From contig DF237513.1 in NCBI GenBank assembly GCA_000708835.1, forward strand, positions 1 to 58,155: DNA of 58,155 nt, read 5' to 3'. The position numbers and the translations under genes are program-made. Positions within the stretch are counted from its first letter, which is position 1. Every line of letters begins with the position of its first letter. Below the pieces are notes generated by a model. The model was not told the DNA's origin. It did no database searches and was given only the letters and a program-made list of their open reading frames with translations. Positions 5,090 through 17,192 of the stretch are shown here, one piece after another. The stretch comes from Klebsormidium nitens (taxonomy: Eukaryota; Plantae; Klebsormidiophyceae).

Positions 5090-10561
<5,472 letters not shown>

Positions 10562-13500
10562 ATGACGGCCTCAAGCCCGTCAAGTTTTTGCGGCTCGCTT
10601 GCTTTTCCAGCAATCAACATCTTGTTTGCAGGATCCCATGGACACTCTTGTGACCTGCATTCCACTTTCATCACTTCTGCCACATGGCCTGATCTAAAGG
10701 TCATCCTCCACAAACAGTTTGTTTTTAAGCAAGGGCGGGAATTGCGCTATGTTTCTGGATTCGACTATAAGACGAGACAATGTCTTCTGCGTTCAGCAGA
10801 GATTTTTTGCACGAGTCGAGACATTTCCAAAGCCGATTGCCCGCACTTAGGGTCTCGACCCTCCCAAGCCCTCCGCTTGCAGTCCAAGGCTGTAGCCAGC
10901 GAGCGGTGCTCTGACATGAGCCCCACAGACTCGACGGGCCTCACCCTATGTGAGCCTGAAGAGAAGTCTGTCCAGCGGGGCAGAGTGTTGGCAATAGGGA
11001 TGGGCACAGCGGGGGGTAAGATGGTGGCCCACATTGGGGACTGCCTGGCGCAGCAGTCACGCGCGGAGTTTGACGCGGTGGAACTGTGGGCTATGAACAC
11101 CGACGTGCAAGCATTGAGGGACACTCACGCTCCACACCATCTACAATTGGGCAGTGAGCTGACCAAGGGCCTGGGTGAGTCGCCAGGGTGGTTGCAAAGG
11201 GCGCTGGGCGAGGTGGGCAATTTGAACCTGTAAGGTCATCTTGGACCGATCGAGCTCCTCCAGAAATTTCTCGCTCCCCCCGAGAAGTTAAGAATGTTTC
11301 ATAGGAACTGTCTACTTGCAATAGGGAGGTTGATGACTGGCTCACCCACCTCCTGTCCTCCACTCAGGCACTGGCGGCGACCGCACTGTGGGGGCGCAGG
11401 CTGCAGAAGTCTCCGCCGCCGCCATTGCGGAGGTGGTGGGGGGCCGGCCGGGGGTGTGCTTCGTCATCTGTGGCGCGGGAGGGGGCACGGGGGGCGGTGC
11501 CTCTCCGCTGGTCCTGAGTGCCGCGCGGGCGGCTGGCCATTTGGCTGTGGCCGTGGTCACATTGCCCTTCAGCTTTGAGGGGCAACGGCGGCTGCGACAG
11601 GCCCGCGCCTCACTGGCGGCGCTGCAGGGAGCGGCTGACGTGGTGTTCGGTGAGGGGCTGGCCAGGCGCTCTTGTCGGCACTTTGGGCCAGACAAGATGA
11701 GGTTGGGGGCTTGGGGGGGCTTTCTGATTTGGTATGTCTACGTCCGACCATGTGGTCCACTTTGACTTGTGTCAAGTTTGTAGTTCTCACCCCTCCTTTC
11801 CTTTGTTGCAGCCATCGACCAGGATGCATTCCTGCAGCAGCGCCAGGACCTGTCCATGACGCAGGCGGCCAGAATGGCGGCCGACCTGGCGCTGCACGCG
11901 ACGCGCGGGATCACAACTTGCCTCCAGGTGAAATCTTATTCCTGCAGAAGACGGGACGGGCAGGCAACCATGCTTTGACTTGAGCACTTCAATCCTCTGA
12001 CATGACCATTCATTAGCGCCCTGCCTAGCATGACGCATGCCGCCAGCTTCGGCAAGAATCGCCAGCACCTCGGGTCTGACTTTCGGCGCCCCTATCCTGT
12101 CCTCAGGCCGAGGCCGCTTCTCCCCCAGCCCAGCCCGCCAGCTTGTCCCGCTCGCTGCTTCAGAGGGGCGTCGTCCAGGTGGGTTGCTCTCCCACCCACG
12201 AGCTGGTCCCTCCTCAACACACTGCCTCACAGAGGACCTCCTCAACAGCTGTCACTAGCCTCCCAAGCGAAGGGCCCCGGCTGACCCTTCTGTCTGGGCC
12301 TGCGTGCAGATGCTGAGGGCATCCGGGCGGGCTGTTGTGGGGCACGCTGAGGGCGCCACCCCCGTGCGGGCCCTTCTGGCAGCGCTCCAGGCGCCGGGGC
12401 TGGGCAGCCTGCACATGGTGAGACTCCCATCATCCGTCCCAGACGTCTCTTACCCCAGAATGGTCATTCAAGTCACATCACGCTAGGCAAATTGGGGGCC
12501 CACAGGAAATGGGCCCCCAACCTCTGGTTGCTGCCTGGTTGACCGGCTCTTGGCAGATCCCCACCTGGTCTGACTCCAGGTCGTGAGCCCGACAGTGTCG
12601 TCCGTGGTGCAGTTTGCGAGCAGCGTGGTGTGCGTCCTGAGCAGTGCGGCCCCGCTGAGCCCGGCCCAGGTGCGGGACGCCCGCGCCAGCGCACAGGCGC
12701 TCACGGGCGGGCGCATTCCGCTGGTGGTGGCCACACGCCAGGACGCAACGGCAGCAGCAGTGGGCGCCACCGTCATCCTCACAGGGTGTGTCCCCGCGCT
12801 CGTCCCACTGGTCGAGGCATAGCCACGAGTCTTTTGAGTCTGCAGCCTGCGAGACATTTGTGCAACTCGACTATTCCTCCTGGACTTCTCCCGCAGTTCT
12901 CCTCCAAGCCCTTGAATTTAGATTGTGATCGCGGGCATATTTTGACTCATGTTTCCCGCCTGTGTCTCTGCAGGCTGCCACACGAGCTGGCGGAAGCCCC
13001 CGCTGCCTCCACCGCTGCCGCTCGCCCACCGCCCCCCCAAGCACCACTGCCACCCCTGGCAGCGCGAGTGAAGGCTGCCCCCGTCACGCCTGGCCTTCAG
13101 GCATCGGCAACTGCACAACGGCAAAAGCCGAACAGAGAAACTGTTACTCAGGCAAGCTTGACGTCTTCCTCCTCGAAAACGCGTGGGAATGCTGCTACCA
13201 AGCAAGCCGTTGCGTCGGAGACACGGCAAAAGGACGGCGCGCGCTTGCCCCCTCCACCTGGCAGGATTAGGGTCTGGTCAGCAGGGGGCACGAGCGTTGA
13301 CGAGCTTTCCAGCCAGCCGAAGGCACAAGACATGCACGGAGACAAGGAGCCGCTGGAAGGGCAAGCGGGGGTACTGGAACCATACAGCAGCATACTGGAT
13401 GGCCCTCGTAATGGGGGCTACGCTGCCCCCCACAAACGGTCAGAAGAGTCGCCGCGACCCCAAGAGCGAGACTCAGGCCAAGGATCGCGACCTGGGGCCG

Positions 13501-15943
13501 ATGCGATCCACGTGGATCGCGAAGCTGGGCGAGAGAGCAATGGTGCTCAAGCTGCGGGTCAAAAGGATGAGCGGGGAACCGCGGCTCCTCGAGAAAAGCT
13601 GTTGGACCAACTGTCGGCAGCAAAGAGTAACGGCACGCCCAACACCCCGGTTCAGGGAGTCGGACCGGTCGGAGCCCCAGCAGATGCCCGCAGGCAGACA
13701 GGGCAGAACGGGAGGGCAGGGATGTCAGTGGAAAACGAGAGCCAGGGGGGGGGCGCGCAGGCAGAGACGAGGGCGGGGGCGCAGGGGGCCACCAGGGAAC
13801 AAGACCACGACAGGGCGAGGAGCTTCACCGCCGCATCTCCCTCGAGGAGCGATGCAACGCAGGGGCCTGCGCAGGCAGCGTGGACCCAGTCGAGGCGAAG
13901 GCCAGAGAGCCTGTCGTCGCCCGCGGCAAGAGCGCAACCCACGGAGCGACTCGGGGCGGGACAGGGCGCGGGGAGCAGCCCCGCCGACCAGCTGGACGGT
14001 GCTGCGGCCGCGCACGCTGCCGCGCTGCAGTGGTGGCGGGAGGTGGTGGAGGCGCACGCGGAGGACAGCACAGACGACGCAGGGGAAGGACCGGACGAGG
14101 ACGACGAGGGCGTGCGGGCGGATCCCGAAGAGGGCAGCGCAGCGAGCTCGGTCTCGTCGCGGGCGCGGGCGATCCTGGTGAGCATGCCTGGGGACGCGCT
14201 GGCGCTTGCGGCAACATGGCCGGGAAGCTCCATGCAGCTGACCCCTTGTTTGATTATCAGTCTTTGTCAGAATCTTCCTAGCCACGGTCTTCTTTGAAGT
14301 TTGCGCAAGGTCAGTCGAGGGTAGGACTAGCTTGTTCGAACAGTTAAGCTATGACTCACTTAGTCATGTGGCAGTACTGAAAACAGAGCTCGTGCAAGCT
14401 GGAGTATGTGGGTCGTCGTTGGAGGCAATCGCTCCGTTCATGGTTCAATCATTCGTACCTCCAGTTATTGGTGACTTACTTCCGCTGCTTGCGGGCATAT
14501 GCTCCAGCTCCGCGTCCGTTAGCGTGAGTTTGATCCTGGAATTGGACACGCGCAGCGGAGGGTGGGTGGATTGCGGGGCACACTCGTATGTGTTTTGGCG
14601 CCCCCCTCACAGCCGGATTGAATTCACGCAGGAAGGACTATTGTATGTCAACAATCCGTTTTCACATAACTGACGAGTACTAGTATAGTAGTACCTTGGA
14701 CTTTCCTCGCTGGTCCCAGGCCGGCTTTCGACAGAGACCAAGGCCTCTCCTAAGTTTCGTATTCAACGGCTGCCTTTCCAATCCGTTCTTCTCTTGTTTG
14801 TCTGCCTGTGCCTCCGTCTCTCACCTCGTGTCCCTGTCCCCCCCCAGGCCCGCGAGCGCGACCAGGAGCGCTACCGGCAGGTGCGCGGGCGGCAGGTGCT
14901 GCCAGATGGCAGCGAGTACGAGGGCCACCTGGCAGCCGGCCAGCCCCACGGACACGTGAGCCTCTCATCTCCGCTGCCTCTTCTCTCCAGCCAGCCGGCT
15001 TCAATTGCGACTGTATCCACGTATCTCTCCCATCATGGCCTCTATCATCGCTCATGGCTTGTCAGTCGCCGTGAACTTGGCGAGGATTATTTTGATTGAC
15101 TCGTAACACCAGGAGCTGACATGACCTTGCCATAGCCTAAAATTGTTCTGTGCTTTTGGCACCACGACCCCCGCCTCCTGCGTCGCTTGGTTGTCGCCCT
15201 CGTCTGTGCGCCCGCCTGAGCGGCCGCCGTCCCCGCCTGCCTGCTGCTCGCAGGGCCGATGCGCGTACCCGGGCGGTGACGTATATGAGGGGGCGTGGAA
15301 GAACGGCGAGCGGCATGGCTGGGGCCGTCTCGCCGAGGCCTCCGGTGACGTGTACGAGGGGGACTGGAGGCACGGCCACCGCCACGGCAAGGTACACCCT
15401 ACCCGACGTTGCCGCACCGTCGGGCCTTCTGCCACAGGGCCTGAGTCGTGCTCGGAAAACCGGTCGCACACTGGTTATCCCACGGGCTCCCCGTCACACT
15501 TTTAGTCAAGAGCGCAGAGGTGCTTCGTTCAAATGTGCTACAGCTTGCAAGAGAGCCCCCGCTCACGTCTGCGCGCTGCCGTGCAGGGCCGTGTGGAGTA
15601 CGCGGATGGGCACGTGCTGAGCGCGCGCTTTGTGGGCGGGCACGTGCACGGGCCGGCCATCATCGCGTTCCGGCAGGGGAGCACCTTCTACGGCGCCTTC
15701 GCCTTCAACCGCCGCCAGGGCGTCGCTGTGACAGTGGACGCAAACGGCAAGCGGTACGGCGGCGGACTTTGTGGGAGCACAGAGCGTTTCTGCAGCCAGG
15801 TGTCGGGTGATTCCGCTGTTGTCGTGTTGGATCAGGGTAGCACTGCTCATGCCTTTTCCTATGTTTTTGCCAGCTTTTGCTGACTGCCACTGGTTGTTTG
15901 CAGTGAGTGGGAGGTGTGGGAGCACGGCCAACGGATCTCTTGA
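10562..15943 (+). CDS. ARC3: ARC3-like chloroplast division protein (FtsZ-like domain + disordered middle + MORN repeats); 11 exons, ~997 aa
   Basis: Exons 10562-11174, 11368-11649, 11812-11927, 12134-12178 (uncertain), 12310-12417, 12613-12785, 12974-14177, 14848-14955, 15254-15391, 15587-15753, 15904-15943 (2994 nt). FtsZ motifs: VLAIGMGTAGG, NTDVQAL, GAGGGTGGG, TLPFSFEG. MORN repeats: YEGHLAAGQPHGHG, YEGAWKNGERHGWG, YEGDWRHGHRHGKG. The FtsZ+MORN chimera defines ARC3. Start codon uncertain. Confidence 0.9.
12492..12520. repeat. Perfect 11-bp stem / 7-nt loop hairpin in an ARC3 intron
   Basis: TTGGGGGCCCA-CAGGAAA-TGGGCCCCCAA. Confidence 0.85.
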
Positions 15944-17192
15944 CTCTGGCTCATCACCGTCCACACGTAGTGGCACTCAGGTCGGAGAGGTGCACAAAGA
16001 ACAATATTCCCCAAGCGTAAAAAGGATTGCCTGGTCACAGAACCCAACTTCGGGTACACGGAAATCGGGATGAGCTTGGAAAACGAGCTCGAGTTAAGCC
16101 ACTTAAGTTGGGTACGCACCATTCTGTGCTCTGTGCTGGGGTTTGCTGTTGCAATGCTTGCATATGAAGACCACAAGCACATGTGTTCAGGGGTTTGCTA
16201 TCCACTATATAGCCTTGAAAAACGTTAGTCGGCTCAATGACCTGATACTGAAGTGAAAAACCATTTGAGTGTTTCATAATAGTTATTAGTCTCGATTGGA
16301 CATCAGCTCCGTCGATTAGGGTCCTAGCCAACGGGATAGACTTCTAATCATCGTATTATAGGTCCTGTGACGGTCAGTGCAACAAGATGTGGTGGCTTAT
16401 GGTGACTGTTGCAGCTAGCGTGCATGCGCCTCGTAATGGACTGCTGTAGCTGCAGCGAATGCACAAGTGGCAGCGCGTTGTGAAAAGCAGCGCGCCGGAT
16501 AACAAGCATGCAGAGTCGATGCTAAGTTCTTCCCACATGCAGTTTCATTGCAGGCCGTCCGCATATGAAGTTCAACGGTTTCTTTGCCAAGGTATGTTGC
16601 ACCGTCGTTTTTGACAGGTATGCCAACTATTTCATGCCTAGCTCCGACCACACGCCTCAGCTGCTGTTTCATGCCGCATGTCTAGGTATTTCGACCACAT
16701 TTGGGTCCATCTCGTGTACATGGGAATCGATGCTGATATGTACCTGTGCCAGCCGCCGCATGATGCAAATCTATGGAGAGCCTATAGCCGGTGAGGCGTT
16801 TCGGTCACATTTTTGAGAGAAGCTGGAAGATCACGGAATGCCCTTTGTCCTTCTCGAGCGCGAGGAGGAACTGGACCACTAGGGACCAGGCTCGTTCAAT
16901 GATGGTGAGATTGATCGTTTAGGACAATCATCCTAGCCGGCTACTACTTGCAGCCAACGCCTGCAGCTAAGAACTCCTGTGCTCACTTTGCTGGGGCAGC
17001 TTGAAGCAAGGCCGAGATCGATCACACCAAAACGCTGGTGACGAGTCTTTTATAGCAACACATGCCTCTGTATTGGGACCGTATGAACATGTACAGTTAA
17101 GCAATCAGAACTGCAGTAGCTTGTGACCAAACCCAGCTCGCAGACGCGGCGACCAATGCCATTGAGGACAATCCGAGCTTATTGGGTCGAAA

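Follow-up and report, generated by a model that had tools for sequence, protein, structure and literature searches.

An ARC3-type gene of Klebsormidium nitens occupies positions 10562–15943 of the forward strand of the window, the 58,155-nt stretch of contig DF237513.1; spliced RNA contigs from four studies resolve it into 11 exons coding for a protein of 1006 aa. Sequence comparison confirms that its FtsZ-like core has lost the T7 catalytic residues. The nucleotide ("top") face of the core appears to be conserved and the T7 ("bottom") face to evolve in a near-neutral manner, the T7 rate being derived from 24 codons in one species pair. We consider it moderately probable that the gene is the K. 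nitens orthologue of ARC3, which in the stroma restrains the chloroplast FtsZ ring, and that its FtsZ-like domain is one-sided and either caps FtsZ filaments at the bottom or sequesters FtsZ. The family is known, and the conserved variant state is previously undescribed.

Gene Structure and Transcript Support

The gene model was built from three-frame translation and GT..AG sites, which gave 11 exons on the plus strand. Contigs from four public RNA runs, belonging to four studies, were placed on positions 10400–16300. They carry clean GT..AG joints, indicating that they derive from RNA. All junctions of the model but one were confirmed by these contigs, the exception being the exon 6 acceptor, which is at 12613 instead of 12580 and thus outside the span covered by the initial annotation.

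Exon 1 (10562..11174) contains the start codon, the N-terminal extension, loops T1 and T2 and the first part of T3. An in-frame stop lies immediately 5' of its start, and the exon is unspliced in RNA, with contigs unbroken over 10400/10423–11175 in four runs. Exon 2 (11368..11649) encodes the rest of T3 (GLG/TGGD), T4 (GAGGGTGGG) and T5; runs X1 and X3 contain the junction 11174>11368, and all four runs contain 11649>11812. Exon 3 (11812..11927), with junctions in four runs, covers the T6 region (AIDQDAFL) and helix H7. It is followed by exon 4 (12107..12178), 72 nt and 24 aa long, at the position of the T7 loop and the start of H8. The initial annotation had called for RNA-seq confirmation of this exon, and both of its joints, 11927>12107 and 12178>12310, were recovered in 4/4 runs from four studies, showing that the 72-nt exon is used. 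The "shorter alternative exon" mentioned there found no RNA evidence in the same four runs. Within the FtsZ C-terminal domain, exon 5 (12310..12417), with RNA junctions, supplies strand S7 and helix H9 (MLRASGRAVVGHAEG ... APGL), and exon 6 (12613..12785) the remainder, to ATVILTG. The junction 12417>12613 occurs in four runs, placing the exon 6 acceptor after 12612 and not after 12579. Exon 7 (12974..14177), covered by RNA contigs, encodes a middle region of about 390 aa, and exons 8–11 (14848–14955, 15254–15391, 15587–15753, and 15904–15943 with the stop codon) a C-terminal MORN-repeat domain, every junction of which was found in four runs.

The public annotated protein (P0001, 919 aa), retrieved by an exhaustive HMMER search with 100% identity over the exon 2 query, is named [quoted passage not shown] at NCBI. 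Two features set it apart from the RNA-supported protein: a spliced N-terminal exon without RNA support and an 11-aa insert originating from the 12580 acceptor. The insert was rejected, being absent from RNA and leaving a spacing less like that of FtsZ than the short form does. No Pfam match was obtained on the neighbouring ORFs.

Domain Architecture and Predicted Fold

The protein consists, in order, of an N-terminal extension, an FtsZ-like core, a low-complexity middle region of about 390 aa and C-terminal MORN repeats. Pfam Tubulin matches exon 1 (E 5e-4) and, more strongly, exon 2 alone (E 2.4e-17); solved FtsZ chains are matched at E 1.4e-16 by exon 2 and at E 1.5e-30 by the whole domain, a similarity that chance would not produce. 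Pfam MORN is found on exons 8 and 9 (E 1.3e-6 and 0.01), and PF02493 is precomputed for the annotated protein. The extension ahead of the core, of about 135 aa, is 59% identical in a sister Klebsormidium contig (L001). This putative plastid presequence has 13 Ser/Thr and 2 acidic residues among its first 50. Exon 7, of 401 codons, is rich in A/G/S/R/P and 57% identical to the sister contig; it has no Pfam match and no recognisable domain. Pfam FtsZ_C has no match on the protein. The FtsZ C-terminal peptide was sought as the motif D[IV]Px[FWY]L[RK], which is absent from the protein, whose end is formed by the MORN repeats.

HMMER matches to exon 2 are headed by the annotated K. nitens protein, followed by fragments from related Klebsormidium and then by ordinary FtsZs. 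In word-index protein searches with the core of this protein and the core and MORN domain of a Spirogloea muscicola protein (P0152) as queries, the Tubulin plus MORN architecture was found elsewhere only in three S. muscicola paralogues. The remaining matches of these queries are bacterial FtsZs and unrelated MORN proteins, with no land-plant ARC3 among them, and the top matches of the MORN query (P0205–P0233) are without an FtsZ-like domain. In the ESM Atlas feature search the cluster nearest to the Spirogloea relative is "ARC3, chloroplastic" (0.93), and the shape search returned FtsZ matches only; the PDB contains no ARC3 structure. The domain order is the same as that drawn for Arabidopsis ARC3 (At1g75010): presequence, FtsZ-like domain, middle region and C-terminal MORN domain (PMC12232670). 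The locus is thus assigned to the ARC3 type, as initially proposed, on the strength of its FtsZ-like core and MORN repeats, and its probable orthology to land-plant ARC3 is supported by the architecture and the embedding search. Green algae have already been reported to possess ARC3 (PMC10030945), so that the gene itself is no new find.

An AlphaFold2 model was computed for residues 28–372 of the annotated protein (alignment A1). In the predicted fold (mean pLDDT 88, pTM 0.88) no secondary-structure element of FtsZ is lacking; the C-terminal domain missed by Pfam is present too, with the strand and helix of exon 5 modelled. Low pLDDT is confined to the modelled N-terminal end, the T7 loop and the surroundings of the annotated 11-aa insert. 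Foldseek aligned the model to FtsZ structures with TM scores, taken by target, of 0.87–0.92 over about 330 columns. The core thus has a complete predicted FtsZ fold, composed of the GTPase domain, H7 and the C-terminal domain, and is followed in the protein by a disordered middle region and the MORN repeats.

Nucleotide-Binding Loops and Base Contacts

Motif states were read from an alignment comprising 40 FtsZs, the Spirogloea proteins and the K. nitens core. The T1–T5 motifs quoted in the initial annotation were all recovered in the spliced protein where it had placed them; its description of T1–T5 as FtsZ-like holds in full for T2–T5, which are canonical, and only in part for T1. T1 (10997–11020) reads GMGTAGGK, with the changes G>T, G>A and N>K, compared with GLGTRGGT in Spirogloea and GVGGGGxN in FtsZ. 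T2 (NTDVQAL, 11096–11116), T3 (GLGTGGD, 11168–11381, crossing intron 1), the tubulin signature T4 (GAGGGTGGG, 11472–11498) and T5 (PFSFEG, 11565–11582, of the form PFxFEGxRR) are canonical in both K. nitens and Spirogloea. The stretch PFSFEGQRR at 11565–11591 carries the arginine equivalent to R143 of Staphylococcus aureus FtsZ.

Several contacts to the base and sugar have been replaced. In the residue numbers of Escherichia coli FtsZ, N24 is K in K. nitens and T in Spirogloea, N165 of T6 is Q in both, and F182 of H7 is A in K. nitens and S in Spirogloea. D186 of H7 is replaced by A in K. nitens and kept in Spirogloea, while D187 is kept in K. nitens and replaced by A in Spirogloea. The replacements outside T1–T5 had been missed initially. 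The aligned motif states therefore suggest a pocket with an intact phosphate/Mg2+ side and an eroded base/sugar side. GTP binding by K. nitens ARC3 is plausible; it is nevertheless uncertain, because the contacts N24, N165, F182 and D186 are replaced.

Loss of the T7 Loop

Exon 4 (12107–12178) encodes AEAASPPAQPASLSRSLLQRGVVQ, a Pro/Ala/Ser-rich stretch located where FtsZ has the T7 synergy loop. It contains no Asn/Asp/Asp triad, and its sole acidic residue, E339, is the second residue of the exon. Between GITTCLQ at the end of H7 and MLRASGRAVVG of strand S7 there are 24 residues in K. nitens versus 15 in FtsZ, where this stretch contains NxDxxD; the K. nitens loop is thus 9–10 residues longer. 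The columns of N207/D209/D212 (E. coli numbering) are occupied by S/S/Q in the MAFFT alignment, by P/Q/S in the register given by HMMER against a solved FtsZ, and by S/L/G when the register is anchored on S7, so that no alignment register places an acidic residue at the T7 positions. In Spirogloea the loop is also lengthened and the same columns read S/N/Q, the Q at D212 being common to both algae. A search for N.D..[DE] in all plus-strand frames of 10400–16300 gave no match. The absence of NxDxxD noted in the initial annotation was thereby upheld in all registers, and a transcript restoring the motif was looked for in the RNA contigs of the four runs and was not found.

Selection on the Two Faces of the Core

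The 9.2-kb genomic contig from the sister Klebsormidium (L001) provided an orthologue for estimates of dN/dS. The values are 0.23 for the core part of exon 1 (T1, T2), 0.11 for exon 2 (T3–T5), 0.085 for exon 3 (T6, H7), 0.78 for exon 4 (T7 region; 24 codons from one species pair only), 0.16 for exon 5 (S7, H9) and 0.28 for exon 6 (the rest of the C-terminal domain). Retention of the phosphate-binding loops, proposed initially from the motifs, is thus accompanied by purifying selection. The parts concerned, namely N/D/Q of T2, T3, T4 and the T5 arginine, serve phosphate and Mg2+ binding and also accept the T7 loop of a neighbouring subunit. In exon 4 only 11 of 24 residues are identical between the two species, with the 72-nt length and the AG/GT borders kept; its counterpart in a more distant contig (L002) was not placed with confidence. 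Of the columns that 75% or more of FtsZs conserve, K. nitens keeps 43/54 (80%) in the N-terminal domain, which is inside the FtsZ range, 1/5 in T7/H8 and 10/18 in the C-terminal domain. The C-terminal domain has diverged relative to FtsZ.

A Proposed One-Sided FtsZ Subunit and Alternative Explanations

In S. aureus FtsZ filaments, one subunit carries the nucleotide and contributes D46, Q48, G72 and R143, which act jointly with N208, D210 and D213 in T7 of the next subunit; these T7 residues are required for assembly and hydrolysis, both of which are abolished by N208L, D210N and D213N (PMC8936486). K. nitens ARC3 keeps the nucleotide-side set and is without the T7 set, and could consequently receive the T7 of FtsZ but not offer one of its own. 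In the mechanism proposed here, the nucleotide face of ARC3, probably loaded with guanine nucleotide, would dock on the T7 face of FtsZ, either of a monomer or at the growing filament end. The decayed bottom face of ARC3 could not recruit the next subunit, and further addition would be blocked. The MORN domain would gate this capping activity, as in Arabidopsis. FtsZ filaments gain subunits at the T7-exposing "bottom" end, and a bottom capper reduces filament length while increasing GTP turnover (bioRxiv 10.1101/2020.02.25.965095). [quoted passage not shown] The bottom face is not simply dead, because the C-terminal domain forms part of it and is still selected (dN/dS 0.16–0.28).

Known blocks of FtsZ growth are comparable: in the S. 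aureus mutants D210N, D213N and N208L and in complexes with MciZ and SulA, which are bottom cappers or sequesterers, an unusable bottom face prevents elongation, as proposed for the ARC3 cap. Unlike these engineered FtsZ mutants or unrelated small FtsZ binders, the predicted K. nitens cap would have arisen naturally as a paralogue of FtsZ and would bring a regulatory MORN domain of its own. The changes N24>K, N165>Q, F182>A and D186>A among the base/sugar contacts, and GTAGG instead of GGGGG in T1, speak against the capper model.

The main rival to a bottom capper is a pseudo-GTPase, the core of which binds no nucleotide and keeps its glycine-rich loops for stability of the fold or as a protein-binding surface. 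We regard this as possible, though doubtful; the protein would in that case inhibit FtsZ without GTP, as supposed for land-plant ARC3. It would account for the altered T1 and for the replacement in K. nitens of all four contacts N24, N165, F182 and D186, and agrees with the description of Arabidopsis ARC3 as probably not a functional GTPase (PMC3494859). T2 (NTDxQ), T3, T4 and T5 (FEGxxR) are nevertheless kept in both Klebsormidium and Spirogloea, and in FtsZ the residues of T2–T5 serve only phosphate, Mg2+ and catalysis (PMC8936486). The dN/dS of 0.09–0.11 in exons 2 and 3, which encode T3–T6 and H7, is likewise at odds with a nucleotide-free core, as is the D186 retained in Spirogloea. Tubulins, moreover, are able to bind GTP despite their non-glycine T1 loop.

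The bottom capper also differs from the arrangement implied by the phrase "unable to activate hydrolysis" in the initial annotation, in which the T7 face of ARC3 would sit on the GTP-bearing end of an FtsZ filament and freeze the interface for want of a hydrolysis trigger. Docking on a filament end as a cap remains the favoured idea, but its orientation is reversed here, the top face being conserved and the T7 face drifting. A cap through the T7 face seems unlikely. It would suit a T7 devoid of all three catalytic/contact residues, and beta-tubulin, with its non-catalytic T7 residue, offers the example of a T7-dead paralogue still binding GTP. Against it, no other exon of the core is under as little constraint as that of T7 (dN/dS 0.78; 11/24 residues identical), S. 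aureus FtsZ with N208L, D210N or D213N neither assembles nor hydrolyses GTP (PMC8936486), and growth of FtsZ filaments takes place at the opposite end (bioRxiv 10.1101/2020.02.25.965095).

A gene-model artefact, with T7 residing in an unrecognised exon or a minor isoform, is very improbable: the public annotation departs from the RNA at two points, and contigs lose rare isoforms, but a hidden T7 exon was rejected on the identical junctions around the 72-nt exon in four runs from four studies and on the absence of N.D..[DE] from every plus-strand frame of the gene, and both the same-length exon of the sister species, with its AG/GT borders, and the ARC3 of Spirogloea are without T7 too.

Comparison with Other ARC3 and FtsZ Proteins

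The globular fold of canonical FtsZ, both bacterial and plastid (FtsZ1/FtsZ2), is matched by the K. nitens core at TM 0.87–0.92. The K. nitens protein differs from canonical FtsZ in the replaced base contacts, in the fusion to MORN repeats and in being without the NxDxxD of T7, an FtsZ_C match and the C-terminal docking peptide. Arabidopsis ARC3 inhibits and remodels the FtsZ ring in the stroma, and a similar role would be expected for the K. nitens protein, the middle region of which is longer than that of Arabidopsis ARC3. Hallmarks of ARC3 function are inhibition or positioning of the chloroplast Z ring and binding of PARC6/ARC6 by the MORN domain. The comparison of the FtsZ-like domains themselves is one by description, the account of Arabidopsis ARC3 (PMC3494859) pointing to a domain that is probably not a functional GTPase. 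In the ESM Atlas, the clusters of land-plant ARC3 list MORN and not Pfam Tubulin, a family that the proteins of K. nitens and Spirogloea do match.

The three S. muscicola proteins, SM000002S05688 together with two paralogues (P0152, P0166 and P0167), combine Tubulin and MORN like the K. nitens protein, but are shorter (755–770 aa). The core is 35% identical between the two algae, and the MORN domain 39% over 130 aa. The Spirogloea proteins have the same T4 (GAGGGTGGG), keep T2, T3 and T5, share the T6 change N>Q and the Q at D212, and have a lengthened T7. They differ in that H7 keeps D186 and not D187 and in that the T7 region keeps one Asn. The initial annotation had suggested that the K. 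nitens copy may be an intermediate. Spirogloea shows the same retention of T1–T5 with loss of T7, so that among the algae compared the pattern is shared, and for algal ARC3s this goes part of the way to the refutation named there. As an intermediate relative to land-plant ARC3, the state is supported indirectly, by the description of Arabidopsis ARC3 in PMC3494859 and by the land-plant clusters that do not list Tubulin. The T7-loss state thus looks common to streptophyte-algal ARC3 and no peculiarity of K. nitens. Since Klebsormidiophyceae and Zygnematophyceae share this state, T7 loss with kept phosphate loops looks ancestral for streptophyte ARC3.

The loss of T7 would accordingly be older than the divergence between Klebsormidiophyceae and the lineage of Zygnematophyceae plus land plants. 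If the description of land-plant ARC3, which for the lack of GTP motifs in angiosperms is a secondary citation, holds, decay of the GTP-binding loops would have come later than T7 loss. In K. nitens the protein might still lend itself to study as a nucleotide-binding domain. The conserved top face and the drifting T7 face together lead to a specific, testable model, namely end-capping by a one-sided FtsZ paralogue. Reviews liken ARC3 to MinC in function while allowing that its mode of action may differ. A more speculative extension, which we hold only tentatively, is that the ancestral streptophyte-algal ARC3 was a GTP-loaded, one-sided capper acting sub-stoichiometrically and freed by hydrolysis triggered by the T7 of FtsZ, and that land-plant ARC3 is its nucleotide-independent descendant. 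Such a nucleotide-timed capper, if true, would provide a concrete mechanism for the replacement of MinC by ARC3.

Gene Model and 5' Leader

The public database protein for the Klebsormidium nitens ARC3-type gene (P0001, 919 aa) departs from the transcript evidence in two places. It starts from the ATG at position 10456, with an N-terminal exon that is spliced (region 10456–10880), and it carries an 11-aa insert, VVSPTVSSVVQ, resulting from the use of the acceptor at 12579/12580 (region 12580–12612). In RNA contigs of four runs, by contrast, the 5' exon is unspliced and the acceptor at 12612/12613 is used. These contigs indicate that the annotation of P0001 is probably wrong at both the N-terminal exon and the 12579/12580 acceptor, and that the real protein comprises 1006 aa.

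The transcript of the ARC3-type gene starts at about 10382–10423, and its 5' leader contains at least two short upstream ORFs (region 10456–10535) ahead of the main ATG at 10562. The first, from position 10456, reads MSPSGKHGIVSTTL and the second, from position 10501, reads MGDKRHLNVRI, each being followed by a stop codon.

RNA Signal Within Introns

Intron 1 (11175–11367) is read through by a 996-nt contig spanning positions 10400–11395 in one run (X8), and depth within this intron is present in runs X1 and X3 as well. Retention of intron 1 would truncate the protein after GLGESPGW...NL, shortly before the T3 motif is complete. Precursor RNA that is not yet spliced, regulated intron retention or carried-over DNA could each account for the signal. 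Another contig, 169 nt long and of low depth (2.9; run X10), lies entirely within intron 8 (15046–15214) and probably derives from precursor RNA.

Related FtsZ-Type Sequences

The fifth-best match to exon 2 (11368–11649) is P0005, a database protein of 840 aa comprising two complete canonical FtsZ cores arranged in tandem in one polypeptide, with the T7 loop intact in each.

The T7 region of the ARC3-type gene is encoded by exon 4 (12107–12178). In L002, a Logan contig from ERR10900018 belonging to a more distant relative, the best candidate for the exon of this region is a 63-nt segment (L002:1008–1070) reading VEPVLASGGKVDPSTPTATIK. This putative exon has K-V-D at the position of N-V-D in FtsZ, and its assignment as the T7-region exon is uncertain.
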